The notes beneath the pieces were generated by a model. That model searched no databases. It worked only from the letters and a program-made list of their open reading frames with translations, and was not told where the DNA came from. Below, piece after piece: positions 9,059 to 60,418 of a stretch of DNA of 64,000 nucleotides (position 1 is the first letter of the stretch; every line of letters starts with the position of its first letter). A program made the position numbers and the translations under genes. The DNA is taken from sequence record LR756501.1. The stretch is one strand, 5' to 3'.

Positions 9059-9230
9059 AATGTCCTCCTTTTTTCATTTTTTATTTCTGAAATACTAATT
9101 TTTTCATTGCTCTTCACAATTCAAAAGTGGAATACACTCAAAATCAGTATGACCAAAAAGTATCTCTCGTTTGAGATAATATTATATATTTAATCACTAC
9201 GGTCCGAAACTAGTCTTTTTGAAAATAAAT

Positions 9231-9243
9231 TTTTAATATATAG
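9231..9243 (+). promoter_or_regulatory. Putative late-promoter motif TTTTAATATATAG (representative copy)
   Basis: Near-identical copies lie just upstream of starts at 9248, 11908(-), 27159, 35031, 42574, 34125(-), 29840(-), 2931(-), 13370, 15336 and others. Confidence 0.65.
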
Positions 9244-9247
9244 CATT

Positions 9248-11211: not shown

Positions 11212-11212
11212 A

Positions 11213-11908
11213 TTATTTCATTATATAAAATACTCCGTCCTTATCCTCATAACTTATCATCTTTTGATTATAAGTGACGTTTTCAAAATGTTTGGACAAT
11301 TCTCTCAAAAGATAATCCGGGTTATAACTATTACAATGTGCCTTACCTAATCTCATCTTAAACACTTTATCCTCACATCTCGTTGGTAAGATATTGAAAG
11401 CCATCCCTTTATTACATTTATTAAATGCCTTAATTAAAATGTTTATAATATCTTCTATTTCGAAGGAATATGTGAAAGTTCCACTAGCGATGAACCAGTC
11501 TGTTTTTTCTTTAACATCTTCTATTGTATTTATCGTGTAGAATTTTGGATTTAATTTAAAACCAAGTAAGTGTTTCATTCTTGTTCCAAATTGACCAATA
11601 GCGTCTCTTATGAAATTTCTATTTATATCAACACCAATATAGTTAACATTTAATCCAATATCTTTTGTGTAACTATATAAATCACCAAACCCACAACCGA
11701 AGTCTAAAATAGAATCGTTATTTTTAACTCCAATTTCTAAAAGATTTTTGAATCTGGTTTTTTGTTCGTTGGGCCCATGTTCCCAATAAACCTTATAAGC
11801 ATTGAACCCTTTGTCCAATTTTTTAGTGGATGTTTTATAACGCTTTCTTTGATTGTTATAAACATCTAAAGTGGCACTCTTATCAAATTCATATAGTTTA
11901 TTGAACAT
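11213..11908 (-). CDS. Class I SAM-dependent methyltransferase
   Basis: ILDFGCGFGDLY (motif I), YIGVDIN, DWFIASGTF. Confidence 0.85.
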   Translation of the reverse strand: MFNKLYEFDKSATLDVYNNQRKRYKTSTKKLDKGFNAYKVYWEHGPNEQKTRFKNLLEIGVKNNDSILDFGCGFGDLYSYTKDIGLNVNYIGVDINRNFIRDAIGQFGTRMKHLLGFKLNPKFYTINTIEDVKEKTDWFIASGTFTYSFEIEDIINILIKAFNKCNKGMAFNILPTRCEDKVFKMRLGKAHCNSYNPDYLLRELSKHFENVTYNQKMISYEDKDGVFYIMK

Positions 11909-23124: not shown

Positions 23125-23468
23125 AATATTTTATCTATCAATTCTGTTCTCTTTATATTCTTAATCTCATTATCACTTAATAAATCTTTACCGTCACCGT
23201 CCCACCTACACTTCTTACATATTATATGTAACCACACATTATAATCACCTAATACGTTAATATGTTCTATATTAATATGATCCCAAGGCCATTTTGGAAA
23301 CCAATCGGTTAAATCCCCATCTGGCAATTCAGGCAGTTCATGAATTGCCTTTCCGAAAATATCGTTACCATATACTTTCTTACCATTACAAACAGATCCT
23401 CCAACTGATTCATTTATAAAATGACCAGTCCATCCACAATTAGGACAATATTTTTTAAACTCTATCAT
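23118..23468 (-). CDS. Zinc-ribbon protein with KRTELIDKIL tail
   Basis: CPNC...CKKC; shared motif. Confidence 0.75.
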   Translation of the reverse strand: MIEFKKYCPNCGWTGHFINESVGGSVCNGKKVYGNDIFGKAIHELPELPDGDLTDWFPKWPWDHINIEHINVLGDYNVWLHIICKKCRWDGDGKDLLSDNEIKNIKRTELIDKILC

Positions 23469-35030: not shown

Positions 35031-36497
35031 ATGTTGAAAAACTATTGGACATATATTAAAGAATCAGCAGATGGTTTAACAAAATTAATAATTTGTATTC
35101 ACAATATAGAAGACTATAACGTTATAGCTGAATTTTTGGATTTTGAAGGGTTCAAATGGGGCAACGAAAGAGTAATCACATTAAATAGAGATTATAATTG
35201 TTTTAAAAATGAATCTCCAGATTTTTGTTTCATTTTACACGAACCAGGGGCTTTGGGATACGGTAGAAAACACGGTTTAATGGGCCCAGGTTGTGATTAT
35301 AACAGTTACAGTTTTATGGAAGGAGTAGATTTCATTGATGAATATATTAATGATAACAAAAAACCAGCAAGAGTAAGATGGTATAAAAAAGGTAAACTAA
35401 ATGAGTCTAAAGAAGATATTGGTAGGAAAGTTAAAATGAGAGATGATTCTCGTTATTACGACGAAGCTTACGGTAAGTCTGGGGATGGTTACGGTGTAAT
35501 TTACGAATGGACTCCTTGTCCAGATTACGCTAATATGGAAAATTACCATTCGTACTCAATAGAATGGAGTAACGGTGTTAAAGACGGTTATCAAAAAATA
35601 GATTTTGATTTTATAGAAGATTTAGAACCAGAACAACCAGTAAAAGTAAGATGGTACAAAAAGGGGAAATTGGTGAATGAAAAAGATAGTTGGGAAGAAG
35701 AAGAGGTCGGTCGCACTTTAGTTGGAAAAAGAGTAAGAATTAGAAAAGATTCGCAATTTTACAATCAAGCTTTTAGAGAAGGGAACGGTAAAAAAGGAAT
35801 AGGAACAGGTATAATCACACATTACGTATATAGTGACGATTACCCTTTTAGTATTAAATGGGACGAAAGTGGAATATCGTTTGGTTATCAAAAAAGAGAT
35901 TTTGATATTATAGAAGACACAGATGAACCAGTTAGAGTAAGATGGTACAAAAAAGGTAAATTAAATGAATCTAAAGAGTATATTGGAAAAAGAGTGAAGA
36001 TGAGAGAAGATTCAGCGTATATTAATCAGGCCTACGGTTATCATAACGAAGATAACGGTGAAGGTATAATAACTGATTACATTAGCGAAGAAGAAAGAGT
36101 AGCAGGCGGACTCCCATATAGAATTACTTGGGATAATAAACACAGCAATTCTTACAATAGAAGAGATTTTGATTTTTTAGACGATTTAAAACCAGGAAAG
36201 ATTAGATGGTATAAAAAGGGTAAATTGTTAAATGAAGGTAAGAAATATATGTACGGTGATATTTGCACTCTTATTGGCACTGATGAAGATGTTAAAATTC
36301 TAGCATTTAAAGATTTTATACATGTAACAGAATATCAAATTGAATATCAAAATGGTAACATAAAATGGGTGCCAGAAGCGTGGTTACAATTTAAAGGGAA
36401 AACTATATCCAAACCAAAACCAGTAGATCGAATAAGATGGTACTCGAATGGTAAGTTAAGAAATGAAAATAAAAAATTTATATATAACAAAAAATAA
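35031..36497 (+). CDS. Five-module polyprotein with [VI]RWYxxGKL(x)NE linkers; modules 2-4 are paralogous SH3-like domains
   Basis: MLKNYWTYIKE; five linker copies; repeated G[RK][KR]V[KR][MI]R.DS.[YF]...A...G.G.I...Y.I.W...DFD. Confidence 0.85.
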   Translation: MLKNYWTYIKESADGLTKLIICIHNIEDYNVIAEFLDFEGFKWGNERVITLNRDYNCFKNESPDFCFILHEPGALGYGRKHGLMGPGCDYNSYSFMEGVDFIDEYINDNKKPARVRWYKKGKLNESKEDIGRKVKMRDDSRYYDEAYGKSGDGYGVIYEWTPCPDYANMENYHSYSIEWSNGVKDGYQKIDFDFIEDLEPEQPVKVRWYKKGKLVNEKDSWEEEEVGRTLVGKRVRIRKDSQFYNQAFREGNGKKGIGTGIITHYVYSDDYPFSIKWDESGISFGYQKRDFDIIEDTDEPVRVRWYKKGKLNESKEYIGKRVKMREDSAYINQAYGYHNEDNGEGIITDYISEEERVAGGLPYRITWDNKHSNSYNRRDFDFLDDLKPGKIRWYKKGKLLNEGKKYMYGDICTLIGTDEDVKILAFKDFIHVTEYQIEYQNGNIKWVPEAWLQFKGKTISKPKPVDRIRWYSNGKLRNENKKFIYNKK

Positions 36498-40585: not shown

Positions 40586-41452
40586 TTATGAATCCATTGG
40601 TAAAGAAATACTTTCTTTTTTATGAATCCATGATAATCTATTTTGTGTAATATTTTCTCCAAATATTTCGTTCACAGCTTTTTGAACGTCGTAAGAGTTA
40701 TAATAGTCGTGACCAGCGATTGTTCCGCCTATTTTCACTTTTGGGTACCATTCTGTTATATCTTTTTTAGCTATTTCGTAACTATGATCAGCGTCAATGA
40801 AAACAAAATCTAAGGACAGATCTTCGTAATATTTTGGAGCTATATAAGAACATTCTACTATTGGGTTTATGTATTCTTTTAACGGTGATATGTTTTTTAA
40901 AAAATTATCGTATAAATTATTATTTTTTAAATATTCTTCGTGATATATTTCACCTGAACCTTGCCAAGTATCTACACAATCAAATTTTATTTTCTTACCT
41001 GAATTTTTTATCTCGGTTGCCATAAATGAACCAGAACGTCCTAACCAAGAGCCTATCTCCACAAAATGATCACCGTCTTTCCCGTCTTGAACAGCCTTTT
41101 TATAAACACTTTGAAAGTCAAACCAACCGTCTATTTTATTATAAATATGATTACCGTATAATTTATCTATTTTTATATCAAATAGAAATGAGGAACCGTC
41201 GTAGAAATTTAAAGTTAAATCGTCATTATCATTAGAATACGCGTCTGGTTTTACCCAATGATTTGTACCTGGATAAGAAAAATTATCAGTAAGTGAGTAA
41301 CAAACATTACCATTTAAAACAAAATCTATTTTTAGTATTTTATTTAAATGTTCACTGCCACCAGCGTCATTCAAATTAACTGAACTAATAATAATTTTAT
41401 TTGGGTCATTTTCTATTCTAACATAGAAATCATTTTCAGTTGGATTTTTCAT
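40586..41452 (-). CDS. Class I SAM methyltransferase (Methyltransf_24-like) with N-terminal extension
   Basis: [11 protein letters not shown]; [10 protein letters not shown]; GGTIAGHDY. Confidence 0.88.
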
Positions 41453-42492
41453 CTTTTAAAAAATTTTTGCCATATATTTTTTTCACCATATTTATCTAAA
41501 TCACTTTCCATCATTAATTTAACCAAATCTTTAAATTTAGTTTTAGCTTCCCAACCAAGAATTTCTTTCGCCTTTGTTGGATCACCAAGTAAAAGATCAA
41601 CCTCTGCTGGTCTGAAATATTTTGGATCCACTTGTATTACAATAGTGTTATTTGTATTTCTATCTACTCCTATTTCATTTACACCTTCACCACGCCATAA
41701 TATATCAATATTAACATATTTACAAGCCTCTTCTACAAATTCTTTATTTGAATGTGCTTCACCTGTGGCTAAAACGAAATCATCTGGTTTATCTTGCTGT
41801 AACATAAGATACATACCATATACAAAATCTTTCGCGTAACCCCAATCCCTTTTGGCGTTTAAATTACCTAAATGTATTGGTGTTTTCGTTTTTGTCCAAT
41901 TAACTAAACCTTTTGTAATTTTTCTCGTTACAAAAGTTTCTCCTCTACGTTCACCTTCGTGATTGAACAATATACCGTTAGAAATGAATAAGTTATAAGC
42001 GTCTCTGTAATTTTTACAAATCCAGTAAGCGTAAAGTTTAGCTACACCGTAAGGTGATCTTGGGTGAAATGGCGTAGTTTCTTTTTGTGGTACTTCTTGT
42101 ACTTTACCAAACAATTCTGATGTAGATGCTTGGTAAATTTTTGTATGTGGTGAGTAACGTCTAACTGTTTCTAGGATTCTAAGTACCCCTAAAGCGTCTA
42201 CTTGTCCTGTATATTCAGGGAGTTCAAAAGAAACTGCAACGTGGGATTGGGCTGCTAGGTTATATAGTTCATCAGGTTTAATATCTTGTATAACGTGCTC
42301 TATTGATAGAGTATCTGTAACGTCACCGTAATGAAGTTTTAGTTGTGGATAAATATGATCAATTCTACCTGTATTAAAGGAGCTAGATCTTCTAATTATA
42401 CCGTGTACTTCGTAACCTTTTTCTAAAAGAAGCTCAGCTAAATGGCTTCCGTCCTGTCCCGTGATCCCTGTGATCAGTGCTTTTTTACTCAT
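41449..42492 (-). CDS. gmd: GDP-mannose 4,6-dehydratase
   Basis: [66 protein letters not shown]. Confidence 0.98.
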
Positions 42493-43673: not shown

Positions 43674-44408
43674 ATGAGAAAATTCCTTTTAATCACGGAT
43701 AAAATAGAATTATTAGCAAGATTCAATCAAATAGTAGTATCTAAAAAACTTAGAGATGACTTTGATTACGGATGGAGCTATAATAACTACGACTTTTGTG
43801 CTGATTATCATAAATCTTTTAACTCTTGGATGTACAAACCTGTTGAACCAATTGACGTTAGAGATAAAAATTTATATAACTACGAAATAATCTTTTCTTT
43901 ACATTGTAAACAATTATTCCCAAAAGAACTTATAGAAAAAGTAAGATGTATTAATATTCATCCGGGTTATAATCCTTATAATAGAGGATGGTACCCACAA
44001 GTGTTTTCCATTTTAAATGGACTACCTTTTGGTGTAACAATACACGAAATAGATAATAAAATTGATCACGGTCCCATTATAACCCAAGAGCGAATATATA
44101 TAGAACCACACGACACTTCTCTTTCAGTTTACGAAAAAGTTGTTGACGTTGAAATGAAACTTCTTGATAGAAATTTAATTGATATAATTAATAAGAACTA
44201 CTCTTTTGTTAGAATACCAGATGAAGGGAACATAAATTACAAGAAAGATTTTAGTAATCTTGGAAAAATTGATAAAGATGACGAAGATACTTTTATTAAT
44301 CATATAACTAAATTAAGGGCTTTATCTCACGGTAATTTTAAAAATGCTTATTTTATTGACGAAAACGGAAATAAGATATTCATCAAAATTGAATTAACAA
44401 AACAATGA
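43674..44408 (+). CDS. NDP-4-amino-4,6-dideoxyhexose N-formyltransferase (VioF/Rv3404c-like)
   Basis: FSLHCKQLFP, CINIHPGYNPYNRGWYPQVFSI, TIHEID..IDHGPII (formyltransferase N-H-D motifs). Confidence 0.88.
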   Translation: MRKFLLITDKIELLARFNQIVVSKKLRDDFDYGWSYNNYDFCADYHKSFNSWMYKPVEPIDVRDKNLYNYEIIFSLHCKQLFPKELIEKVRCINIHPGYNPYNRGWYPQVFSILNGLPFGVTIHEIDNKIDHGPIITQERIYIEPHDTSLSVYEKVVDVEMKLLDRNLIDIINKNYSFVRIPDEGNINYKKDFSNLGKIDKDDEDTFINHITKLRALSHGNFKNAYFIDENGNKIFIKIELTKQ

Positions 44409-45121
44409 AATTCGGAATAGTACTACCTACTTATTATAGAAAAGACGGACAAACATTAGTCTTCTTATATAAAGCGATACAAAATATAATGCTTCAATCT
44501 CATTCTGATTGGAAACTTTTTCTAATTGGTGACGACTACGATAAACCAGACGAACTAGAATTCATAGCTTCACACGTGCCATCAATCATGATAACATATG
44601 TGAATTTACCAGTGGCTGATGAAAGAAGTAGATATACTGGTAACGATCTATGGTTGTGTAGTGGCACAAACGCTCTCAATAAAGGAATAGAATTATTAGA
44701 AAAAGAAGGAATAGATTATTACGCTCATTTTGATTACGAAGATAAATGGGAAGTAAATCATCTCGAACTACACAATAAAGCTTATCTTAAATATCCAACC
44801 GTATCTTTTGTTTATTCAAAGGCTCATTACGTTAGACCTAAAAATCTTTTTCCTCCTAATTTAACTGACGATGTAGTTAATAATTTACCACCAAAAGGTA
44901 GACAGGTTATTCATCAGACAGTAACTTTTAACGTGAGTAAGATGAAACATAGATATATTAATATGATAGATAAAGGGGAGAAGAAAGCATCTGACGCCGA
45001 TCTTTGGGACAGAATATATAAAGACGTAAAAGAAGGAAAATTAGATACTTACCACATACCTAAAGCCACTGCTTATCATTTAGCCGAAGGATATTGTGCA
45101 ACAATAGACTGGACAAAATGA
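44405..45121 (+). CDS. GT2-family glycosyltransferase
   Basis: IVLPTY, LFLIGDD, YAHFDYED, DADLW. Confidence 0.85.
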   Translation: MKFGIVLPTYYRKDGQTLVFLYKAIQNIMLQSHSDWKLFLIGDDYDKPDELEFIASHVPSIMITYVNLPVADERSRYTGNDLWLCSGTNALNKGIELLEKEGIDYYAHFDYEDKWEVNHLELHNKAYLKYPTVSFVYSKAHYVRPKNLFPPNLTDDVVNNLPPKGRQVIHQTVTFNVSKMKHRYINMIDKGEKKASDADLWDRIYKDVKEGKLDTYHIPKATAYHLAEGYCATIDWTK

Positions 45122-46143
45122 AAATAAACTGGGTAAATAAGAAAGATATTAACTGGGATAGAGTTAAACACTATATGGATTTTTCTATTAAAGAAAATCA
45201 ATTTAGTAACGACGGACCTCTACAAAAAATGCTAAGCGATAGACTTAGATCTATATTAAAAATTAGTTCCAGTAAAGTTATAATTCCAACTTGTAGCGGA
45301 ACTGCTGCTCTCCACGCTCTTGTTTCTGGCATAAATAGTAAACTCGGCGTTGAAACACGATGGGCAACCCAAGATTATACATTCCCAGTTTCAGCTCAAG
45401 GTGTACTGAGAAATTCAGTTATAGTGGATATAGATTATAACGACATTTCACCAGACTTAAATTCTTTAGAACATATTAAAGATAATATCAATGGAGTTAT
45501 AGTTACTAATATGTTTGGATTTGCCAGTGATGTTGAGAAATTCATTAAATGGAGTGTAGATAACGATAAATTTCTTATTTTTGATAGTGCCACTGCTCCA
45601 TATACATTCTACAATTTTTTAAATGTGAATAATTTCGGAGTTGGTTCTATAATTAGTTTGCATCACACGAAACCACTAGGATTCGGTGAAGGCGGAGTTA
45701 TTATAGTTGATAGAGAATACGAAGCCGATGTTAGAAAATCTATAAATTTCGGCTATACTAAATCAGTTAAGAAGTGGTCTGTACACGGATCTAACTGGAG
45801 AATGAGTGATATATCTGCAGCTTTCATTCTTCAACATTTAGATAATTTCTACGCTATTGATCATATTCATAAAGAATTAGCAAAATATTTTGAAAATAAA
45901 TTGAAAGAAACAAGATTTGAATTTATTAAACAGTACGATAATAGTTTAATATCATGTTTACCAATCAAATCATTTGAAGGCGAGATAGATATAAAAGACG
46001 TTGAATACAAGAAATATTACGAACCTCTTATAGGTTACGCCAACTCAAATAAATTATACAATGAAATAGTCTGTTTCCCTCTAAATACTGATATGACTAA
46101 TGAAGATTTAGACTATATAATAAAATACTTAAAGACAAAATGA
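45094..46143 (+). CDS. DegT/DnrJ/EryC1/StrS PLP-dependent sugar aminotransferase (likely start at MKINW, ~45118)
   Basis: CSGTAALHAL, LIFDSA, SLHHTKPLGFGEGG (PLP lysine), NWRMSDISAA. Confidence 0.92.
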   Translation: MCNNRLDKMKINWVNKKDINWDRVKHYMDFSIKENQFSNDGPLQKMLSDRLRSILKISSSKVIIPTCSGTAALHALVSGINSKLGVETRWATQDYTFPVSAQGVLRNSVIVDIDYNDISPDLNSLEHIKDNINGVIVTNMFGFASDVEKFIKWSVDNDKFLIFDSATAPYTFYNFLNVNNFGVGSIISLHHTKPLGFGEGGVIIVDREYEADVRKSINFGYTKSVKKWSVHGSNWRMSDISAAFILQHLDNFYAIDHIHKELAKYFENKLKETRFEFIKQYDNSLISCLPIKSFEGEIDIKDVEYKKYYEPLIGYANSNKLYNEIVCFPLNTDMTNEDLDYIIKYLKTK

Positions 46144-46775
46144 ACAAAGAAGAACAACAATATTATTTAGATAAATTACAACCATACGTTGAAGATTTTG
46201 AAGGAGAACGTTTTCACGAACATTATTTCATTCTACACTATCTCATAGATCAATTAGATAGAGACGTGAGATATTTAGAAGTTGGATTATGGGACGGTGC
46301 CAGTTTTTGTTACGTTGCTCAACATCCTAAAGTAAAAGAAGTATATGGTATAGATATTAAAGTAAGAGAACTCCTCTATAAAAACCTAGATAAATATCAA
46401 ATCAATGCTGGTATATTTCAAACAAATTCAAATGATAAATCAATTTTAGAATTAATAAAAGGTAAATTTGATTTAATATTCATAGATGGTAGTCATAATT
46501 ATTTTGACGTTATTAAAGATTATACAGTATATAAAGAACTTGTAGAAGTTGGTGGATATTTAGTGTTTGACGATTATATGGATAAATTTTCACCTGATGT
46601 TAAGAAAGCTGTAGATTACATGAGAAATATAGATAATTTCAAAGGTTTTGAAATAATTGGTAGTCTGGAACAACATATACCTATTTACTACGATTATAAA
46701 ATGGTTGAAGGTAAAGTAGTGAAAATATACGATTCACTCGGCACTCTTAATAATTACATCTTGAAGAAGTTATAA
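46140..46775 (+). CDS. Class I SAM methyltransferase (Methyltransf_24-like)
   Basis: YLEVGLWDGAS; FIDGSHNY; GGYLVFDDY. Confidence 0.88.
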   Translation: MNKEEQQYYLDKLQPYVEDFEGERFHEHYFILHYLIDQLDRDVRYLEVGLWDGASFCYVAQHPKVKEVYGIDIKVRELLYKNLDKYQINAGIFQTNSNDKSILELIKGKFDLIFIDGSHNYFDVIKDYTVYKELVEVGGYLVFDDYMDKFSPDVKKAVDYMRNIDNFKGFEIIGSLEQHIPIYYDYKMVEGKVVKIYDSLGTLNNYILKKL

Positions 46776-47879
46776 ATCTAAAAAGAATAATAAATTTTTA
46801 GATGTTCTGAATTCCATTCTTACGCGGTTGGCTTCACAATTATAACTATGATAGGGAATGTACCAACTTTCCATACCAGCTAAAGCTGTATAGTTTTTAT
46901 GTTCCCAATTCTTTTTATCTCCAGTATAGAAATAAAAACTCACATCGTGTTCAGGTGTAATATCTATATTTGGTCTCACAAATATTCTATCAACCTCACA
47001 TCTAATTGTGAAATCATTTATAGTTATAGGTGATAGAAATTTTAGTTCGTCCTTAACTATATTATAAATTTCATTATAATCTTCGATCCAAACATTTTTA
47101 CAATTAGATTTTGTTCCCCAAGTAATATGTCTCAATTTAGAAGAAGCACAAATATATGTTTTTTGTGTATTTTTCAAATTCTTTTCCATCCAACTGAAAA
47201 CATAAGGACCTGTCGACCTTCCAAATATCACGTCACAAAACAAAGATAAATAAGATATATCTATCAACTCTGGGGCTATGTCCGATGTGAATAAAACGTT
47301 AGGCTTATCTAAAGCTATTCTCTCTGTTAAAAGAAATTGAACATACGGATAATCATCTGATAATCTATTGATTATATCTAAAAAATTAATTTCCTTTATA
47401 GACTGGTAGGCAAACACGGGTCCATTCACAACAAGAACTTTTGGGTATTTATTAATTTCGATAAAGGCGTCAACCTTAGTTTTATCGATTGTATCAAAGT
47501 CTATGAATGGTACGTAGTCTCTTTCGTCTCCAAGTTTTATTCCTAATTTTTCGTATATGTGTGTAAATAATCTATAAAAAACACCAGATACAGTACGATC
47601 GGGTGAATCAACTTCTTCGTTAAATAAAGAATTATAAAATCCTATCCAAACATTTATATACAAATCGTTATTAACTCTTAATACAATAGTGGAATCTTGG
47701 CAATATTCGTTTGTTTTACCATATACCAAATTAGGAATATCACTTAATACTCCAGGATTATTGTTGTGTAAATATTGATATTCATCAAAATGTGTTTTCT
47801 TCATTATATCTCTAATATACGACCTTGTGAAATGAATATCACCATTATGCCATAAATTATAAAATATTAATTTACCCAT
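46770..47879 (-). CDS. GT-B/GT9-like putative glycosyltransferase, paralog of 55462..56571
   Basis: HNGDIHFTR N-terminus and IFGRSTGPY (GT9-like IGxDSGP); neighbour of a GT9 gene. Confidence 0.55.
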   Translation of the reverse strand: MGKLIFYNLWHNGDIHFTRSYIRDIMKKTHFDEYQYLHNNNPGVLSDIPNLVYGKTNEYCQDSTIVLRVNNDLYINVWIGFYNSLFNEEVDSPDRTVSGVFYRLFTHIYEKLGIKLGDERDYVPFIDFDTIDKTKVDAFIEINKYPKVLVVNGPVFAYQSIKEINFLDIINRLSDDYPYVQFLLTERIALDKPNVLFTSDIAPELIDISYLSLFCDVIFGRSTGPYVFSWMEKNLKNTQKTYICASSKLRHITWGTKSNCKNVWIEDYNEIYNIVKDELKFLSPITINDFTIRCEVDRIFVRPNIDITPEHDVSFYFYTGDKKNWEHKNYTALAGMESWYIPYHSYNCEANRVRMEFRTSKNLLFFLDL

Positions 47880-48723
47880 AAAATTCTTTTATTTTTTTAT
47901 AAACGTAACTAACATTAATAGAATCACATAATTCTTCATTGTAATCTTTAGTGTAGAAGTACTTATCCTGTAACGGACTTGTTATCTTTATAGTTCTTCC
48001 GTAATCATATATCTCGTGAGGTGAAGTACTATTAAATAAAGCTATCACCTTCTTTTTAAGAGCTATAGCTATATGCATTCCAAATGTATCTGGACAAACT
48101 ATTAAACCACAGTTGTTTATATCATCTATATGTTCTTTAACGGTTGGTTTTATATCTAAGAAACTAACGTCGTAATCTTTTTTAAGTAAATTATATAATT
48201 CATCAAATCCGTTCCATTGTTTACTCTTCCATACACCGTTAACTGTTTTTATTAATCCTATTTTATTTGATTTAATTGTTTCGTAATCAAATACATATTC
48301 TTGTTCTTCCCATTTTCCGCCAACCATTTCTATAAGAATTTGGTTATAGGATATTCTATTTTCTTTTTTCAATTTATTAGCGATACATTCACCGTAGTTA
48401 CTTATAAGGGACATATTGAACCAGTATTTACTTTCTACTGTATATGTTTTATGTTTATCAATTCCAACAAGTTTATCGTAAGAAGGACGCTCGTCGAAAG
48501 GATATTCTTCATTAAGGCTGATAACTAAATCGTAGTTTATTGTGCTGTAATAAGGTGATAAATCTTCTATAAAAAATAGTTCTTTAATGAGTTTTGAGTT
48601 AAGAATATCTATGTTACGGACTGATGTTAACCAATATATATTGTCGTGTTTAAACTGATTAAGGAGAATAGTAGTCCTCAATACGTCACCATGCGGTCCT
48701 ATGTTAATTATTAAAACATTCAT
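47872..48723 (-). CDS. GT9-family (heptosyltransferase-like) glycosyltransferase
   Basis: GPHGDVLRTT; IVCPDTFGMHIAIALKKKVIALF. Confidence 0.85.
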   Translation of the reverse strand: MNVLIINIGPHGDVLRTTILLNQFKHDNIYWLTSVRNIDILNSKLIKELFFIEDLSPYYSTINYDLVISLNEEYPFDERPSYDKLVGIDKHKTYTVESKYWFNMSLISNYGECIANKLKKENRISYNQILIEMVGGKWEEQEYVFDYETIKSNKIGLIKTVNGVWKSKQWNGFDELYNLLKKDYDVSFLDIKPTVKEHIDDINNCGLIVCPDTFGMHIAIALKKKVIALFNSTSPHEIYDYGRTIKITSPLQDKYFYTKDYNEELCDSINVSYVYKKIKEFYG

Positions 48724-48753: not shown

Positions 48754-49488
48754 TTGTTTATGAAAAGATTACCTATTGACTATGTTTCATCTAGAGATAA
48801 GCATTATTTTCTTTTTAAACAAGATATAGGTTTAACAAGCTGTATAAGGGAAGGAAGATTATGGGAGCCACACTTATACGAAGCAATTAAAGATTACGAT
48901 TTAAAAGGTACCAACATAATAGATATTGGTGCAAATTTAGGTGCTCACACTCTCGAATTTGCAGAAATAGTTGGCGATGAAGGTAAAGTCTACGCATTTG
49001 AGCCACAGAGAATAGTTTATTATCAACTATGTGCCAATATAATAGCAAATGGATTCGATAACGTCATCGCTATTAATAAGGCTTTATCTAATAGGAATGG
49101 AGTAACACATATAGAAAAACAAAATTTTTATTTAGACGGATTATTAAATATAGGTGATACTCACATATCAAATGAAGGCGAATTAGTAGATGAAATAAGA
49201 TTAGATGATTTGCGTTACGATAATGTTAGTTTAATAAAGATGGACGTGCAGGGTTACGAACCATTTGTTCTTGATGGGGCGATAGATACAATATGGAGAA
49301 ACAAACCAATTATTTTAATTGAAATAGAAGAAAGCCAATTAGTTGGGTTTAATAAGTCTACAAGTGATGTGATTAATTTTTTCAAAAGTATTTCTTACGA
49401 TGTTAAAAAAATACACGATATAGATTATATAGCGACACCAAAAAATAATAGCAGTTTTGTAGTTTATGCAACCAAAAATAGATTATGA
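48754..49488 (+). CDS. FkbM-family methyltransferase
   Basis: [33 protein letters not shown]. Confidence 0.92.
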
Positions 49489-52400
49489 ATACGGTGATTA
49501 CACTTACGGTGTACCAAAGACTAACGGTGAGGGCGAATTAAAAATAGGTAAATTTTGCTCTATCGCTGAAGATGTTAAATTCATATTGTGGGGGCATAAA
49601 ATAAATTTATTTTCTACGTACCCATTTGGTCATACGGAACAAACAAAAGATATGTCTCCGTCTAATGATCATTTAGTAAAAGGTAAAATCGTAGTTGGTA
49701 ACGATGTTTGGATAGGTGATGGAGCAACAATAACTTATGGTGTTACAATAGGCGATGGAGCCGTTATATCAGCTAAATCTTACGTAACTAAGAATGTAAA
49801 ACCATATACTGTTGTAGGTGGAAATCCAGCAGAGTTCTTATTTACAAGATTCAGTAAAGATGTAGTCGATATTTTATTGAAATTGAAATGGTGGGATTTG
49901 CCACACGATGTGATAAAAAATAATATAAATATAATGACGTCAAATAACGTAGAAGAACTAAAAGCATTTTATAAAATTTCTAAAATAGATGAAATAGTAA
50001 ATAAATCATTTGACTACCACCAAACTCAACAAAATAAATGGGAATACGGTGAATTACTTAAAAAGTTGATCCAATATAGAAAAACGGAAAGTATTCTAGA
50101 GATTGGAGCGAAATATGGTGGCACAACTTACGGATTTTGCAACACATTTGATAAGGTCGTATCTATTGATATTTTTAAAGAGGAACAAATTAACGAATTA
50201 GAAAAGACATATAACAATTTAACTTTTATTTTAGGTGATTCACACGCCCAATCTACAAAAGATAAATTGAATGGAATGAAATTCGACGTTATTTATATAG
50301 ACGCCGAACATAATTACGACGGTGTGAAACAAGATTATTTAGATTATAAAGAATTTATAAAAGACGACGGTATAATAGTATTTCACGACATTAAAAGAAC
50401 TTCGTGGACTGATGATATAGGCATTCAAGTACCTTTATTATGGGAAGAAATTAAAAATGATTATAACTACGAAGAATTAATTAATAACGATAATGATTGT
50501 TACGGAATAGGTTTATTGTTTAAAAAAAACATAGAAAGAGAAATGAAAATATTAGTTTTTTCCTGTTGTTTTAACGAGGAACACATGTTACCATTCTATC
50601 TTGACTACTACTCCAACTTCATAGGAGCAGATAAAATCGTTATAGTTGACGGTGGAAGCTCAGATAGATCTCAAGATATAATTAAAGCAAATTCAAAAAC
50701 TGAATTAATTATTGACGTACAAGAAAAACTAGACGATAGACATTTAAACGATCTTAGAAACGACGGCTGGAAACCATATAGAGATCAATATGACTGGGTT
50801 ATAGTTTGTGATATAGACGAATTTATATACCACCCTAATCTCAAGGAAAAACTTAAAGAATATGACGAAAATGGTATAACTATACCATTAACAGAAGGTT
50901 ACGATATGATTAGTAAAAAGTTTCCAAAATTCGAAGAAGGCAAATATTTACCAGATATAGTAAATAGAGGAGTAAGAGATTCTGTTTTTTTAGATAAAAA
51001 ATCAATATTTAAATCATCTATTGATATTAATTATCATATAGGTAGTCACGGTTGTGATCCCATAGGATCAGTTAAATACAGCGATACAAGAGATATAAAA
51101 CATTTACATTTTAAATGGGTAGCACATAAATACATGACTAGAAGATCAGCTGGTGTAGCAGATAGATTAAGTGATTGGAATTTATCAGGTGGTTGTGGAT
51201 CACATAATCGTCCTTTCAGTTTAACTTCTATATCTGATTTCAATAAAAGATGCGACTTTCAATCTGTACAGGTTATAGGGGAAGAAAATAAAACTACACC
51301 TCTTTACGCTTTCTCACATAATTACCTTGTAAATAATTGGAACTATATACTGGATAACCAACTTAGAATATTAAAAGAAAGCGGATTATACGATGAAATT
51401 ACTACTTTATTTATGTACGTACATGGTGACGATAAAGAGTTTAATAAATTTCAAGGAAAAGTGAATTCTTACGATAATTTATTCAGAATTAATATAGTCA
51501 GAATAGAAGAAAATTTCTTTGAATATCCCACTCTTCAAGCTTTATATGAATTTGTTAAAATAGAAAATGCTTACATTTTATATTTTCATTTGAAAGGAGT
51601 GTGGAGTGTTTATAATAGTACTGGAAACCGTCTAGCTATAGATAGTTGGAGAGAATGCCTTGAATATTTCAACATAGAAAAATGGAGAGACTGTGTAAAA
51701 AAATTAGACGAAGGCTACGAAGTAGTTGGCGCTCTTTATAATTACAACGAAAAAGAACCACTCTTTAGTGGTAATTTTTGGTGGGCTAACTCTAAATATA
51801 TCAAGAAGTTACCAAAATTGGAATACGTTAAAGAGAACGATCCTGATCCAGATGAAGAAGCTAAAACTTGGTGTAGAGTTGAATGTGAAAAATGGATAAA
51901 TAGAATACCAAATAAATTCTACAATTTTTATATTCCAAAAGATTACGGATTTTATTATATGCCAATAGATACAAAAGATTACAAAGAAAAATCTTATTAC
52001 AAGATAAGTGTTTTAATACCAACATATAATAGATTTAATCTTTTAAAAGATGCTATACAATCTGTGTTGGATCAGAATTACGATAATTTTGAAATTCTTG
52101 TTTGCCACGACGGTCCTTCAGATGAATATAATAAATTTAAAGAAGATAATAAAAACGATAAAATATTTTATTACGAAGTGCCAAGAAGAAATAACTACGG
52201 TGCCGCCCAAAGAAACTTTATGTTAGAAAAGGTAACAGGTGATTATATTCTACACTTAGACGATGATAATATAATCTATCCTGGTTATTTTGATAAAATG
52301 ATCGCTCAAATTGATAACAAGACTGGAATGGTTATTTGTAGAATTCATTATAACGATAAAGAATGGACTAACTACGTACTACCATTAGCTGATAGAATAC

Positions 52401-54733
52401 AAGATTGTGAAATAGATCAACTAGGAATATTGTTTAAGGCAGATATTGGTAAAATGTTTACGTGGGACGATTATTTTGGACACGACCATAGATATATTAA
52501 AGCCTGTGAGAATGTTATCAACGCACAAAATTTGAAAATTAAATACATACCCGATGTTTTAGCAAGTCATAGATTCTTCGGTGAGGTAATACCTAGAATT
52601 GTAATAGTTCATCATTGTTATTTAAGATACGGCTGGAAAGATATATTAGAAGAACAAATATTCTTAATGAAGAATAACGGTTTATACGAAGGGTGTACAG
52701 AAATATTTGCTACAATTTACGCTGACGATAAAAATAATATTAAAGAATTTAGAAGCATTATAGAACAAGAAGACACACTCAAAAAATGGAAAATAATAGA
52801 ATTACAACAAAATAATTACGAGTACGACGCTCTTAAACATCTTAAAAAATATAGTGAAGATAAACACGCTTATATTTGTTATTTCCACTTGAAAGGTGTT
52901 ATAAGTAAAGAGATCGATCCGAATGTGGGTATTCCAACTTGGAGAAAGTACCTCAATTATTTTACTATAAATAAATGGAAAGAAAATATTGAACACTTAA
53001 AAGATAACGATATAGTTTGTGTTGATTGGAATTTTAACGATATGCACCAAAAATATGTTTTAGGCGGACATTTCTTCTGGACTAAATCAGCGTACATAAG
53101 AACTCTTCGTGAACCAGAAAATAACGAAAATAGATTTCTTTCTGAAATATGGATAACTAGTAATCCAAATGTTAAAATACACGAGAATTTCAATTACGAA
53201 AAAATAGGATATAAGAATCTTTATTTACAATGGTTTCAACCTTTAATCTATAGGACAGATCACGAGGAATACGCCAACGAATTAGTATCTTGGTCTTTTA
53301 GAAAATACGGTGAACAAGAAAATAAATATGAATATAAAGACTTTATTAAAGGTTTAATGATCAATAGTTTAAATCAAAGTATTTTAGAAATTGGTTCAAA
53401 ATATTACGGATCGACTTATTGTTTTTGTAACATGTTCGATAAAATTGTATTAATTGATAAATATGAAACAGAACAAATTAAAAAATTAAATAAAGAATAT
53501 AATAATTTCAGTTTTATTCTTGAAGATAAAGACGCTAAAGATAAAGTAAAGGGGATGAAATTCGACGTTTTATATTTACGAAACGAATATAAAGATTGTC
53601 TAAAAGAAGATACAGCCTTAATTTTTCACGATTTTAAATATAAAGAGGAGGAGCCAGTTGTGATTGAACCAGTTGCTGAACCAATTAAATTCGTAAAACC
53701 AAAAACTGTTTATATTATTACTTCTCATCCTAATTATAAAATGTCTGAGGACATAACTAAAAAGACTTTAGAAAATATTAGAACGTTCGGCGAAAAGGTC
53801 ATACTTTCGGCTCATTGTCCTGTATCACCTGATATACAAAGATTGGCAGATTATTTTGTTTACGATAAGAATAATCCTCTTATAAAACACGACTTCTATA
53901 CAAACAGTTGGTTTCCACACGATGACTACCACGCACATTTGAATATAACAAAAGAAGACAATAATTTCAATCACGCTCTTGGTGTTTTTTTGAATTATTA
54001 CAACAGTTTAATTTTAGCCAAGTCACAAGGATTTAATACTGCGGTTTGTACTAATTTTGATATGGTATTCAGTGCAGAAGACAAGAAAATTATAGACGAA
54101 AGAATATACAAAATGAGAATGGAAGGCAAAAAAGCTTTCTTTATGAGGTCCAAACCAGCAGAAGGAGTACATTATAAAACAATATTCTTTATAACAGATG
54201 TTGATTATTTTATTAATACCTTTAAGTATATAGCCAACGAAAAATTATACACAGAAGAAATGCAGAAAGTTGGTTCAAATACTAATTGTCTTGAAAACTT
54301 TGTATATCATTCTTTGAAGAATAAAACAAATGATCTTTTACTTGAGGAAATAAATGAGGAACAATTATTCCCAACAAGTCAAATCAATTTATTCTCTTTA
54401 ATTGAATATAATACTATATTACCAGTTGAGAACGAACCAGATAAATTTATTATATGGTTTAGTTCGGCAAACTCACTTGATAGTAGAGATTTCAATATAG
54501 CTGTGAGAAAGAACGGTAATATCATATTAACTGATCTTAAACCAATTGATAAAAAGTTTATATATTACAAGAAAGTTAAATTCACTAAGGGAGATAATTT
54601 TGAAATTAATTTCAGAGTTATTAACGGCAACGAAGTGTTAAAGAATAAAATTATAAGAGTTAACGACGAAGTGTTTAATGATATTAAATCTTACGGTAAT
54701 TTTATAGATAGAAAAAACATAGAAAGCATATGA
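49466..54733 (+). CDS. 1755-aa multi-enzyme glycan-modifying polypeptide: hexapeptide acetyltransferase, methyltransferase, two GT-A domains, two copies of an unknown domain, degenerate methyltransferase, C-terminal GT-like domain
   Basis: [22 protein letters not shown]; [21 protein letters not shown]; CCFNEE..VCDIDEF; [14 protein letters not shown]; two FHLKGV..W..F.I.KW..G.F.W repeats. Confidence 0.9.
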
Positions 54734-55446
54734 GAGATAAAGAATATACTGTCTTATCACCAGAAGGGGTTTACGTTAAAAGAATATTCAGAGAAGATAA
54801 TATAATTTTTGACGAATATAATTTGATTTACTCAGAGATGTGGAAAAATGCAGATTATGATTCTAATGGATGTATATATCAAAGACACGGATGTGTGATA
54901 GAGAAAGGGGATATAGTTTTAGATATTGGTGCTAACGTTGGATTATTTACTAATAGGGCTGCTTACGATGGTGCTTCAAAAATAATAAGTGTGGAACCAT
55001 CTAAATTATCTTTTAGATGTTTACTTGATAATTTACCAGATAACGCTGAAGCCTATAAATTTGCTATATCTGATAAAAGAGGTTTCGAAACTATCACTAC
55101 ACCGAATATAAATCATTTGGGGTGTGCTACAGTATCTAATATAGACGAATGTTATTCGACAGAGAAAATTTATACAACAACCATTGATGATTTATACGAA
55201 TGCGGTATAATAGAAAAGGTAGATTTTTTAAAAATTGATACGGAGGGATGTGAAGTTAAAATATTTAAGGGAATTTCTGATACAACGATTGAGAAATTAG
55301 GCATTAAAAAAATAGCTTTTGAATTTCACGATAATCTTGATCAATCTTTAATGGAAGATATAATCCATAAAAGATTTGTTCCTTTGGGGTTTAAATTCTT
55401 TGTTCTATTTTGCACAATGAATAAAATAGTGAACCTTTGGAAATAA
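54730..55446 (+). CDS. FkbM-family methyltransferase
   Basis: [30 protein letters not shown]. Confidence 0.92.
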
Positions 55447-55461
55447 AAATATAGAAAGCAT

Positions 55462-56571
55462 ATGATAAACAAACTTATTTTTTACAACAATCATAACAAC
55501 GGTGATATACATTTCACTAGGGAATTCGTTAGAGACATAGTTCAAAAAACTAATTACGATGAATATTATTTTCTTCATAAAAGAAGTCCTAAATTATTAA
55601 TGGATATTCCTAACTTAAAACACGGTCCATTAAATGAAAATTGTAAAATTGATTCACCATTTCATATAATCAATAACGAAACATATGTTAATACACATCT
55701 TGGTGTTTACGAAATATTTGTTGATAAAGTGAACGATGTTAGTTTACCTATATTCTACGATTACTTTCAGATAATATTCAATAAGCTGAGAGTACCTATG
55801 GAAAAGAAAAAACATTACTTGCCAGTAATAGATTATAAACAATTTGAAATATCAGCAATTAACGAATATATCGAAAACAATAGAGCTTTTTCTAAAGTAA
55901 TTGTTTGTAACGGTGACGTGTATTCAAATCAATCCCTTCCCATCGATTTTAAAGTTTTGATTGAAAGACTGGCTAATGAATATCCAAAAACACATTTTAT
56001 ATTAACAGATAAGAAAGACGTTATAGAAAAAGAAAACGTTTTATATACATCTGATATTATTAAAGCTGGATCAGATCTAAACGAAATATCTTATTTATCT
56101 ACTTTTTGTTCGGTTATTATAGGTAGAGCTTCCGGTCCTTATTCATTTACAGAAGTGAAAGAGAATTTTAATGACGTTGATAAAACTTTCATATTTATTT
56201 GTAACATATATAGTGACGGTGCTTGGTACGACCAAACATTATGCTCAAAAGTGTGGATAAACAATTACGATTTTGAAAACATATACGAAACAATAAACGG
56301 TGAACTCAAAAAACAAAACAACTATAATAATTTAGTTGACGCAGTTAGTAAAGATAACAGAATAGTAATCACACCATTTGAAGACGTATCACATAAAGTA
56401 AGAATTGATTTCTATCAAGATAAAGAATTATTATATAGTTATAAAACAGATTTTAAAAAAGGCATATTCCACTGGATAATGCCTCACGGTTATTATAGAA
56501 CAGGAAACATTGTAAGGTGTAAATTTTATAACGACGAAACTAATCAATATTTATTTCAAAAGATAGTTTAA
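55462..56571 (+). CDS. GT-B/GT9-like putative glycosyltransferase, paralog of 46770..47879
   Basis: HNNGDIHFTR; IIGRASGPY; same length (369 aa) as its paralog. Confidence 0.55.
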   Translation: MINKLIFYNNHNNGDIHFTREFVRDIVQKTNYDEYYFLHKRSPKLLMDIPNLKHGPLNENCKIDSPFHIINNETYVNTHLGVYEIFVDKVNDVSLPIFYDYFQIIFNKLRVPMEKKKHYLPVIDYKQFEISAINEYIENNRAFSKVIVCNGDVYSNQSLPIDFKVLIERLANEYPKTHFILTDKKDVIEKENVLYTSDIIKAGSDLNEISYLSTFCSVIIGRASGPYSFTEVKENFNDVDKTFIFICNIYSDGAWYDQTLCSKVWINNYDFENIYETINGELKKQNNYNNLVDAVSKDNRIVITPFEDVSHKVRIDFYQDKELLYSYKTDFKKGIFHWIMPHGYYRTGNIVRCKFYNDETNQYLFQKIV

Positions 56572-57564
56572 ATCCATTACCCAATTCTTAATGGAAAGAA
56601 GTTCGTATTTAGAAACTATATCTTCGTCAAATAACTTATGATATACTAAACATAAATCAGTAGTCATACTTATTCCAGATAATTTAACACTATTTAGAAT
56701 ATCTATTAATCTTGGAACAACTAGATACATAGACATCTCGTCCTTAAAATCATTTAAATAATTGTGCTGATTTCTCACCTGATGAGTATCAGGACTGTGG
56801 AATCCTAAATTATAACCATATTCCCACATTATTCTTTGTGCTACATAACCTCTCAGAATATCAGTAAATCTAAAATTAACAGACATAGGTAAATACATCA
56901 ACGGGAAACATTCTTTTCTCCATAAAGTATTCTGTGTGTTAAACGGGCTATACAGTCCACTATTTAAAGAAATTTCTTTACCTTCTTCGAATTTTATATT
57001 TACCTTCTTATTCGTTAATCTATATATGGCGTCAACGTCAGTATCTCCATTTATTAAACCCTGCCATACTCCTATTTTAGATGTGGATCTTTCCTCTTTA
57101 TATTCTATGTCTTCGTTTATCTTTGTTATATCAAAACCACGATGCCATATATTCTCTTTGGTAAACAGCTTATAAATATTAATTACCCTAGATGGCGACG
57201 TTATTTTATTATCACATTCAAACTTAAAATCTTTGAGAAAATTATTATCATTTATAAATGTGTCGTCATCAGATTCATATATAACCTCAGCCCCATTAAC
57301 CATAGCGTAAATATAACCAATATTCTTTCTGGAATAATGGTTCTCTGGAGTAGTAGATATAGACCTATATTTAAAATCTAATTGATCATCTAACGATAAG
57401 AATATCAAATCTTTATAACTATAAGTTTCACTTTTATCGTCGCCAACTATAATTGTTTTAAAGTTATCTACTTGTGTAAATTGTTTAATATTATCGTTTA
57501 GTGGGTTTATTGTTGTTATTACTATATTATTCATATTTCTTTCTCCATAATCTATTATGCCCAC
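56551..57564 (-). CDS. STELLO/DUF288-like glycosyltransferase
   Basis: IVITTINP, IVGDDKS, NHYSRKNIGYIYA, IYESDDD, DTDVDAIYRL, FNTQNTLW, RFTDILRGY. Confidence 0.85.
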   Translation of the reverse strand: MGIIDYGERNMNNIVITTINPLNDNIKQFTQVDNFKTIIVGDDKSETYSYKDLIFLSLDDQLDFKYRSISTTPENHYSRKNIGYIYAMVNGAEVIYESDDDTFINDNNFLKDFKFECDNKITSPSRVINIYKLFTKENIWHRGFDITKINEDIEYKEERSTSKIGVWQGLINGDTDVDAIYRLTNKKVNIKFEEGKEISLNSGLYSPFNTQNTLWRKECFPLMYLPMSVNFRFTDILRGYVAQRIMWEYGYNLGFHSPDTHQVRNQHNYLNDFKDEMSMYLVVPRLIDILNSVKLSGISMTTDLCLVYHKLFDEDIVSKYELLSIKNWVMDLNYLLK

Positions 57565-59869: not shown

Positions 59870-60418
59870 TTAATTTTTAATTACTTGTGCAAAATCTAAT
59901 TCAACTGGTGTCTTTCTACCAAAAATCTTAATACTAACTTTAAGACGTTTCTTTTCCTCGTTAATTTCTTCTATACAACCGTTAAAATTAGCGAAAGGGC
60001 CGTCTGATATTACTATATTTTCACCTGTAACAAAATCAATCTTGGCACTATCACCAGCCTCAGCTAAAGCGTCAATCTTACCAAGAATCTTCTTAACTTC
60101 CTCTGGTCGAATAGCGTCCGGTACGTCTTTACCATTCTTGTCTTTTCCTCCTAATATACTTATAACCCCAGATGTTTCTTTTATAACGTGTTGAATCTCA
60201 CCCCTTAGGTCTGCTTCAATAAGAATATAACCTGGGTAATAATTAACTTCTCTATTAACTTTCTTTCCATTTTTGACGTAGACTTCTTTTCTAGTAGGTA
60301 TAACCATTCTAGTAACATATTCTTTTAAATTTTGTTTTTCAAACTCTTTTTCTATATGTTTGTAAGCCTTCTTTTCTTGCCCACTCGAGCATCTAATCAC
60401 GTACCATTTATTTTCCAT
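59870..60418 (-). CDS. nusG: Transcription elongation/antitermination factor NusG
   Basis: KWYVIR..SGQEKK, YYPGYILIE, DGPFANFNG, VSIKIFGRKTPVELDF.QV (NGN plus KOW domains). Confidence 0.97.
   Translation of the reverse strand: MENKWYVIRCSSGQEKKAYKHIEKEFEKQNLKEYVTRMVIPTRKEVYVKNGKKVNREVNYYPGYILIEADLRGEIQHVIKETSGVISILGGKDKNGKDVPDAIRPEEVKKILGKIDALAEAGDSAKIDFVTGENIVISDGPFANFNGCIEEINEEKKRLKVSIKIFGRKTPVELDFAQVIKN

Follow-up and report, generated by a model that had tools for sequence, protein, structure and literature searches.

The window analysed here, the whole of a 64,000-nucleotide (nt) stretch of sequence record LR756501.1, holds an open reading frame (ORF; 49466..54733, plus strand) for a protein of 1755 amino acids (aa). 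This protein is probably a cytoplasmic multi-enzyme for the stepwise assembly and decoration of a short hetero-oligosaccharide, and two copies of a domain of Pfam family DUF8361 (PF27674), called X1 and X2 below, are among the transferases proposed for it, in this case metal-independent ones. The window was 100% identical to GenBank records LR756501.1 and LR756503.1 ('uncultured phage', 735,411 bp), with the ORF at 304526-309793; record LR756501.1 carries no annotation. Al-Shayeb et al. 2020 assigned the 735-kb genome to the Mahaphage clade and predicted a Bacteroidetes host; their paper says nothing on glycosylation (PMC7162821).

The ORF runs through 5.3 kb without an internal stop or frameshift. 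Its product is predicted to be soluble, with no transmembrane segment and no signal peptide. In the sequence ATGA its stop codon shares letters with the start codon of the gene behind it, and the ORF is translationally coupled to this downstream methyltransferase. As shown in Table 1, nine domains follow each other along the chain. An initial annotation, made from the letters of the DNA, had listed an acetyltransferase, methyltransferases, glycosyltransferase (GT) domains and a duplicated domain X; all listed segments were found in the order it gave, by Pfam and NCBIfam searches and by BLASTP of the two halves of the protein. The multi-domain enzyme for glycan building and tailoring that it had proposed was likewise supported by the domain inventory and the folds.

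The same architecture recurs elsewhere. Residues 601-1262 found about 37 unannotated relatives of about 1,000-2,700 aa (most 1,300-2,700), in which DUF8361 is combined with GT2, Methyltransf_24, FkbM, GT92, GT1, GT9, hexapeptide and CmcI domains. Hidden Markov models (HMMs) built here gave their common core as GT2_4 - DUF8361 - GT2 - DUF8361 - (MT24) - Cterm. The Cterm domain was nearly always last, and the number of DUF8361 copies ranged from 1 to 4. An orthologue, P0096 (1756 aa, 94% identical), is encoded on a separate 208-kb metagenomic contig, and the IMG/VR contig L008 (108 kb) has an open frame of ~1757 aa with a copy that is 93% identical. Both had the same nine-domain order.

An assembly artefact had been named in the initial annotation as what would overturn its reading. 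That the 1755-aa ORF is a chimera made by metagenome mis-assembly or by a read-through error, and that the true genes are separate, is very improbable. The GenBank record does lack annotation, and the related phage contigs L004 and L005 carry the C-terminal domain as a separate, nearby 346-aa gene and the remaining domains in a different order (GT2_4-X-X-...-GT2). Against this, the nine-domain order was repeated in P0096 and L008, which come from other samples, and the artefact was excluded by these two copies on independent contigs; about 37 relatives have the same core order as single ORFs, the frame is uninterrupted, and the junctions between domains are tight and conserved. The fusion is not an artefact, because an independently assembled 94%-identical orthologue exists. 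The order in L004 and L005 indicates domain shuffling and gene fission or fusion.

In a tree of 92 DUF8361 domains, the copies that follow GT2_4 formed one clade, with linkers mostly of ~8-14 residues and some of ~60-280, and the copies that follow GT2 formed a separate clade with linkers of 1-3 residues. The separate clades indicate two conserved two-domain modules and a duplication of X that predates the family. Tandem DUF8361 arrays of 2-3 copies were common elsewhere. The duplication is thus ancient and typical of the family, not peculiar to the 1755-aa gene.

X1 (residues 618-816) and X2 (1050-1235) shared 32% identity over ~200 residues (E 3e-25) when the N-terminal half was compared with the C-terminal half by BLASTP, and by this alignment they are true paralogues. 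The motif of 22 protein letters first noticed in both copies was visible in the alignment with one difference, X1 having FEY where YEY had been written. Neither X1 nor X2 gave anything meaningful in permissive searches of an older Pfam release or in NCBIfam, PHROGs and PDB sequence searches, and no glycosyltransferase family was matched; the blanks in Pfam arose because PF27674 is newer than the release searched. No sequence similarity to canonical GT-A glycosyltransferases was detectable. PF27674.1 was precomputed on the 1755-aa protein (P0001) and on most relatives. A search with X1 found stand-alone members of ~232-247 aa (E 8.8e-33 to 1e-14), most of which carry PF27674. The family has no assigned function: every source name seen for its members was 'hypothetical protein', and no papers mentioning 'PF27674' or 'DUF8361' were found.

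The family is large and mostly viral. With one bacterial member as the phmmer query, the number of clusters (50% identity) was 3,573 for a cutoff of E <= 1e-3 and fell to 1,788 for E <= 1e-10. DUF8361 clusters in the ESM Atlas were 89-100% viral, mostly Uroviricota. A tighter sub-alignment of the family (A3), used for the scans of IMG/VR and of species genomes, gave at least 569 matches in IMG/VR, and two DUF8361 motif patterns occurred in 82 of ~185,000 species genomes, including Prevotella/Segatella, Chlamydiae, Verrucomicrobia, Planctomycetota and Thermoactinomycetaceae. The only deposited phages to carry the domain were Synechococcus phage S-SRM01 and a marine single-virus genome. In phages and bacteria alike, methyltransferases and GT2 domains recurred as fusion partners or neighbours of DUF8361. 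Prevotella micans has it with cytidylyltransferase, epimerase and GT11 genes, and Croceifilum has two copies, each adjoining a Methyltransf_24 gene. In contig L001 (291 kb, large and phage-like, also with Mtd_N and RF-1 domains), a compact cluster at 5443-11721 comprises an epimerase, an unknown gene, a 2-oxoglutarate (2OG)-Fe(II) oxygenase, DUF8361, GT9, a C-methyltransferase-like gene and DUF5672, in this order.

An HMM of DUF8361 built here detected X1 and X2, and three copies in the phage genome. The third copy lies at LR756501.1 327269-327967 (minus strand, E 5e-48) within a 490-aa open frame, ~18 kb downstream of the 1755-aa gene and about 8 kb past the end of the window. Four further proteins (P0163, P0170, P0176 and P0178) have three tandem DUF8361 domains, some of them with little or no other sequence, a composition which suggests that DUF8361 alone can build repeats.

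An AlphaFold2 model of X1 (24 aligned sequences) reached a predicted local distance difference test score (pLDDT) of 88.8 and a predicted template modelling score (pTM) of 0.89. Foldseek matched it to GtrB, ArnC and SpsA at E ~5e-7. VIA matched it to ArnC (Z 12.5), hyaluronan synthase (12.4), mannosylglycerate synthase (12.4) and the fucosyltransferase WrtF (12.2, root-mean-square deviation (rmsd) 3.0), and 135 chains had Z >= 8, nearly all of them GT-A or nucleotidyltransferase folds. At the level of the model, the GT-A fold of domain X was confirmed. The initial annotation had proposed X as a candidate new GT family. The domain indeed has a GT-A fold and matches no GT family of Pfam, NCBIfam or PHROGs; it is not strictly new, since Pfam DUF8361 exists.

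The DxD motif was absent from X1 and X2. Directly after beta-4 (model residues 103-108), H-x-K-G occupies that position, as H708-L-K710-G711 in X1 (nt 51587-51598) and H1141-L-K1143-G1144 in X2 (nt 52886-52897). In the 92 DUF8361 domains, the K and G of this motif were conserved to 100%, a set of twelve positions including them (H618, L641, E686, Y706, H708, K710, G711, W728, W740, G769, W773 and E808) to 97-100%, and R729 and R804 to 91-93%. We infer from the model that DUF8361 is a metal-independent GT-A transferase with a lysine in place of the cation: the invariant Lys of H-x-K-G would neutralise the donor diphosphate instead of a DxD-bound cation, and a conserved Glu (E808/E1227, or E686/E1119) would serve as the catalytic base. 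Cation independence of X is read at the sequence level only, from H-x-K-G in place of DxD. In metal-independent GT-A enzymes, e.g. the GT14 core-2 GlcNAc-transferase, basic side chains neutralise the donor diphosphate. The analogy to the GT14 enzyme is one of mechanism only, as no sequence or specific structural relationship to it was found.

Two points count against a transferase of this kind. Sugar nucleotidyltransferases had nearly equal Z with the X1 model (GlmU 12.1, IspD ~10.7), and because they score close behind (Z 10-12), the chemistry of X is not settled by the fold alone. The DxD position of X was assigned by topology, the hhalign alignment to the GT2 profile being non-significant (probability 1.6%); taken as a consistency check only, this alignment agrees with the assignment, placing H-L-K of X on D-D-D of GT2 in the same register. 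None of the hhalign comparisons of DUF8361 with the GT2, GT2_4 and C-terminal profiles built here was significant (probability at most 1.6%).

The initial annotation had compared the protein with chlorovirus A064R, and the comparison proved apt, since the best named viral matches of X1 include a probable A064R orthologue. A064R has 638 aa. Its domain 1 (D1, residues 1-212) is a DxD, Mn-dependent GT-A beta-L-rhamnosyltransferase with a solved structure, its domain 2 (D2, 213-438) an inverting, cation-independent alpha-1,2-L-rhamnosyltransferase, and its domain 3 (D3) a 2-O-methyltransferase that methylates the sugar added by D2 (PMC9614988). D2 is not homologous to any annotated GT; homologues exist in pithoviruses, and in 2020-22 D2 was called 'a new GT family' (PMC9614988). 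When the X1 model was searched against BFVD, uncultured phage proteins matched at E 2e-18 with template modelling (TM) scores of 0.75-0.85. M1IF74 (638 aa) matched at E 5.8e-16 (TMq 0.76, 23% identity, 237 columns), and M1HWA2 (445 aa) and klosneuvirus, harvfovirus and cedratvirus proteins also matched. By its accession series and length M1IF74 is probably a chlorovirus A064R orthologue.

The solved A64R-D1 structure was not among the top PDB matches of X1 by Foldseek or VIA, which makes D2 the simplest counterpart for the match in the 638-aa protein. On this structural evidence X probably belongs to the family of A064R domain 2. The link fits the H-x-K-G reading, in which DxD is lacking, and the fact that methyltransferases accompany DUF8361 throughout the family. 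The link is weakened by its dependence on one structural match to an entry of only probable identity, and by Lacipirellula parvula, the cited bacterial homologue of A064R-D2, which was not among the 82 genome matches. A Pirellula DUF8361 query against a representative library gave no 638-aa protein with a central match among the best 150, and in viral and metagenomic proteins with two domains the N-terminal one was methyltransferase-like or unassigned, not A64R-D1-like. Proteins of the order DUF8361 - methyltransferase - GT2 were observed in a Pirellula sp. metagenome-assembled genome (L114, 2974-5130) and in Singulisphaera sp. PoT (L129, 2992-5487). These planctomycete fusions may be the kind of 'GT-family protein' cited as the best bacterial hit of A064R-D2. 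A064R-D2 did not found CAZy family GT114, which is the family of A075L, a GT-B enzyme.

Sugar nucleotidyltransferases have a glycine-rich G-x-G-x-R loop after beta-1. This loop was not found in the DUF8361 alignment, where beta-1 ends at the conserved H618 followed by N/x-Y/x-L. Its absence bears on a different role for DUF8361, as a nucleotidyltransferase that forms sugar nucleotides or as a non-catalytic binding module that assists the upstream GT2-type domain. We regard such a role as unlikely. GlmU, IspD, GMPP and RmlA-like structures scored almost as high as glycosyltransferases (Z 10-12, and in Foldseek), the DxD is missing, and the linker between GT2 and X2 is only 1-3 residues long throughout the family, as if the two were one unit. 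A helper module does not fit, because DUF8361 often occurs alone (~210-250 aa) or in 2-3 tandem copies without GT2. Conservation of the polar set (H, E, H-x-K, R, E) at 91-100% argues for catalysis, and the probable A064R orthologue, in which the domain that matches is a proven transferase, ranks among the best specific structural matches.

The other GT domains differ in how far they follow the canonical pattern. The Glyco_tranf_2_4 domain has its DxD at D449-I-D451 (nt 50810-50818) and the GT2 domain at D932-D-D934 (nt 52259-52267). The C-terminal region gave nothing meaningful in permissive Pfam, NCBIfam, PHROGs or PDB sequence searches, and only five homologues were found by word search, stand-alone proteins of 341-346 aa and one fused to Methyltransf_24. 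The initial annotation had called this domain GT-like, and its model has a GT-A fold: VIA matched residues 14-245 of the segment to B4GALNT1 (Z 12.5), BcsA (12.4) and mannosylglycerate synthase (12.1), and Foldseek to WrtF and glycogenin at E ~1e-4. N1530-F-D1532 stands after beta-4 at the DxD position and is kept in all five full-length homologues. The moderate quality of this model (pLDDT 72.6, six sequences) tells against the assignment. The beta-sandwich that follows may bind carbohydrate or the acceptor.

In the BLASTP comparison of the two halves, the second methyltransferase, MT2 (residues 1271-1391), was 46% identical to MT1 (175-310; E 4e-29), and a gap of 12 residues was seen on the MT2 side. 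When MT2 was aligned with MT1 and with the relatives' methyltransferases that precede the C-terminal domain, the region of the S-adenosylmethionine (SAM) loop was retained. Three parts were deleted: the 12 residues that hold 'ID-x-x-H-x-Y-x-x-VK-x-DY', 3 residues of the 'GDSH' loop and the last ~45 residues. The segment alone had no Pfam match. The eroded methyltransferase copy described at the outset was thus borne out, with its catalytic segment deleted. The erosion in P0001 is shared by two proteins close to it, P0096 and P0097, and an intact methyltransferase stands at the same place in P0100, P0103, P0108, P0111 and P0127. By these alignments MT2 is a lineage-specific dead domain. Because it is retained in three variants, a structural role is suggested.

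The N-terminal acetyltransferase domain is of the CatB/Vat class and lacks the N-terminal ~45-55 residues of CatB/Vat, aligning only from their residue ~46-69 onward. Its NCBIfam scores were 149.7 bits for Vat (cutoff 300) and 130.8 bits for CatB (cutoff 350). Because these scores are below the curated equivalog cutoffs, an antibiotic-resistance enzyme was ruled out. The domain is read from its family matches as a glycan O-acetyltransferase.

The following scheme is a proposal as regards the catalytic activity of DUF8361 and of the C-terminal domain, the donors, the step order and the acceptor. Each of the five GT-A-fold domains (GT2_4, GT2, X1, X2 and the C-terminal domain) would add one sugar, GT2_4 and GT2 as canonical metal-dependent DxD domains and the C-terminal one as a divergent enzyme with N-F-D. 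MT1 would O-methylate and the CatB/Vat-class domain O-acetylate the product. MT2 would be kept as a spacer or scaffold, and either it or the beta-sandwich may help to hold the acceptor. The donors would be 6-deoxy- and 4-amino-4,6-dideoxy-hexoses from the adjacent GDP-mannose 4,6-dehydratase (GMD), aminotransferase and N-formyltransferase. The 'processive synthesis' put forward in the initial annotation had no evidence behind it; the presence of five different domains of transferase type suggests that sugars are added singly, one after another.

Table 1. Domains of the 1755-aa protein and neighbouring genes, with positions in the window.
Feature	Position (nt)	Residues	Strand	Basis or remark
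Methyltransf_24/TylF-like O-methyltransferase	40586-41452		-	just upstream of GMD gene
GDP-mannose 4,6-dehydratase (GMD)	41449..42492		-	TIGR01472, 520 bits vs cutoff 415
Sugar N-formyltransferase, 4-amino-4,6-dideoxyhexose type	43674..44408		+	NF005755, 265 bits vs 238
DegT/DnrJ-type nucleotide-sugar aminotransferase	45094..46143		+	family scan
Stand-alone Methyltransf_24 / CmcI-like O-methyltransferase	46140..46775		+	family scan
GT9-family (heptosyltransferase-like) glycosyltransferase	47872..48723		-	family scan
FkbM-family methyltransferase	48754..49488		+	end overlaps start of 1755-aa ORF
Hexapeptide-repeat O-acetyltransferase, CatB/Vat (XAT) class	49466..49981	1-172	+	Pfam Hexapep and NCBIfam, aa ~8-170
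MT1, intact SAM-dependent Methyltransf_24	49982..50530	173-355	+	Pfam aa 211-309, 50.5 bits vs cutoff 26.3
GT-A domain, Glyco_tranf_2_4 / GT92-like (GT2_4)	50531..51265	356-600	+	Pfam aa 370-462, 61 bits vs 27.5
X1, DUF8361 (PF27674)	51290..51997	609-844	+	family match, model, alignment
Canonical GT2 (Glycos_transf_2)	51992..52585	843-1040	+	Pfam aa 848-975, 99.8 bits vs 23.3
X2, second DUF8361	52586..53266	1041-1267	+	BLASTP to X1, HMM; ~1-residue linker to GT2
MT2, degenerate Methyltransf_24 copy	53270..53674	1269-1403	+	BLASTP to MT1
C-terminal GT-A-fold domain	53705..54400	~1414-1645	+	structure model and structure searches; orphan by sequence
C-terminal beta-sandwich	54404..54709	~1647-1748	+	matches to GH2-sandwich and FN3-like domains (Foldseek)
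FkbM-family methyltransferase, weak RfbT-like match	54730..55446		+	translationally coupled to 1755-aa ORF
STELLO-like glycosyltransferase	56551..57564		-	family scan
GT2 + Methyltransf_24 two-domain protein, 514 aa	57527..59071		-	family scan

The neighbouring genes (Table 1) are predicted to make GDP-mannose-derived 6-deoxy and 4-amino-4,6-dideoxy sugars, for which GMD would supply the GDP-4-keto-6-deoxymannose precursor. A further dehydratase/epimerase of the short-chain dehydrogenase/reductase (SDR) type was also found among them. Three further Methyltransf_24-type methyltransferases (one of them GT2-fused) and two FkbM methyltransferases lie near the 1755-aa gene; seven methyltransferase-type domains were counted at 40-59 kb, one of which (MT2) is degenerate. 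Among the ORFs scanned at 39.5-62.5 kb there was no polyprenyl-phosphate (phosphoglycosyl) transferase, flippase, polymerase or ABC exporter.

Two 369-aa ORFs, 46770-47879 (minus strand) and 55462-56571 (plus strand), flank the 1755-aa gene. They are paralogues (36% identity, E 3e-67) with no Pfam, NCBIfam or PHROG match, and may be further unrecognised glycan enzymes. The product of 55462-56571 was 66% identical to that of the 368-aa gene following the Cterm homologue in contig L004. A NusG-like transcription factor gene adjoins the glycan locus both in the window (59870-60418, minus strand) and in L004 (14272-14820, minus strand).

To a phage structural (virion) protein as the acceptor, by analogy with chloroviruses, we give slightly less than an even chance; the chlorovirus precedent, the soluble enzyme and the absence of export genes in the scanned region point that way. 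As the main alternative with the same chemistry, the target could be the host envelope, i.e. lipopolysaccharide (LPS), capsule or another surface glycan of the Bacteroidota host, for instance for a superinfection block or a serotype change. This we hold to be possible, with somewhat less confidence. GT9, the family of LPS-core heptosyltransferases, is adjacent here, and in a second large phage it is the neighbour of a DUF8361 protein that stands alone; in bacteria, DUF8361 genes are part of polysaccharide-type loci that also hold GT11, cytidylyltransferase and epimerase genes; the next gene, for a methyltransferase, is weakly similar to RfbT, the V. cholerae O-antigen capping enzyme; and Al-Shayeb et al. 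note for huge phages that some of their proteins are predicted to function at the surface of the host (PMC7162821). An envelope target is less consistent with a 1755-aa protein that has no membrane anchor and with a scanned neighbourhood in which neither an initiating polyprenyl-phosphate transferase nor a flippase, polymerase or exporter was detected, missing steps that host machinery could supply. In chloroviruses, the closest characterised analogues (A064R and A111/114R) are soluble, work in the cytoplasm and glycosylate the capsid protein (PMC9614988).

Two considerations detract from a virion acceptor. The adjacent GT9 gene could indicate LPS-type acceptors, and several neighbour ORFs without a family, including the two 369-aa paralogues, could hide export or lipid-carrier functions. 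Candidate acceptors of this uncultured phage may be encoded in the window: 7805-9058 (minus strand) has a weak collagen-triple-helix-repeat match below the Pfam cutoff, 6560-7795 (minus strand) encodes a DUF4419 protein, and 35031-36497 (plus strand) has weak Ig-like matches and matches to PHROGs of unknown function. Their products may, from these matches, be surface or structural proteins.

A 1202-aa ORF elsewhere in the window (23465-27073, minus strand) combines a calcineurin-like phosphoesterase (Mre11/SbcD-like) and an SbcC/Rad50-like AAA domain in one chain. The only N run of the window (21 bases, 26463-26483) falls inside it.

A wider proposal can be put forward tentatively, and we think it somewhat more doubtful than sound. 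DUF8361 may be a huge, mostly viral, metal-independent GT-A family of which A064R-D2 is the sole characterised member, and it may be part of a toolkit common to huge phages and giant eukaryotic viruses that megaphages have concatenated for virion glycosylation. The shared toolkit would then consist of DUF8361, a capping methyltransferase and virus-made 6-deoxy sugars, and conveyor-like enzymes of 1,300-2,700 residues would let megaphages glycosylate their own virions in the bacterial cytoplasm. Already under the main reading, a Pfam DUF of about 3,570 clusters, mostly from phages, would gain a function, that of a cation-independent glycosyltransferase with a recognisable catalytic motif, and would be tied to the one biochemically studied example, from a chlorovirus. 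By that reading the largest known phages possess complete pathways to make, assemble and decorate a sugar chain, condensed into single giant proteins. This points to glycosylation under viral direction in bacteria, to an extent described until now chiefly for the giant viruses that infect eukaryotes. Shuffled but rule-bound, the modules GT2_4-Xa and GT2-Xb, with Cterm last, offer a natural system for multi-step glycan synthesis on one polypeptide, and the giant proteins are also an enzyme source for rare methylated or amino 6-deoxy sugars.

Compared with known proteins, X1 and X2 share their invariant residues with the stand-alone DUF8361 proteins of phages and some bacteria. The domain is single in those proteins, whereas here it occurs twice inside a nine-domain fusion. 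SpsA, GtrB, ArnC and Xenopus hyaluronan synthase have the same fold and strand order as X1 (Z 11.5-12.5, rmsd 3.4-4.3 A, 173-179 residues); canonical GT-A enzymes carry DxD where X has H-x-K-G.

A064R, like the 1755-aa protein, is virus-encoded and soluble, with GT-A domains fused to a SAM methyltransferase that caps the product. Its D2, like DUF8361, matches no annotated GT family and comprises ~226 aa; D2 needs no cation, and DUF8361 is without DxD. GDP-mannose 4,6-dehydratase is virus-encoded both in the chlorovirus and in the present phage. The two proteins differ in size and setting. A064R has three domains against nine here (including five of GT type, an acetyltransferase, a dead methyltransferase and a beta-sandwich), and its virus infects an alga, whereas the host of the present phage is a bacterium. 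The donor sugars probably differ as well, since the phage pathway genes indicate GDP-mannose-derived and 4-amino sugars.

Chlorovirus A111/114R and the Mimivirus multi-domain glycosyltransferases also have several transferases per chain and build virion glycans (PMC9614988). They consist of other domain families, have three domains against nine, and belong to eukaryotic viruses. Multi-domain glycosyltransferases of viruses are thus already known from A064R and A111/114R. What is new here is the nine-domain scale with five GT-type folds, the bacteriophage setting, the unannotated family with its rule-bound architecture, and, for DUF8361, the testable active-site motif and the probable tie to A064R-D2.

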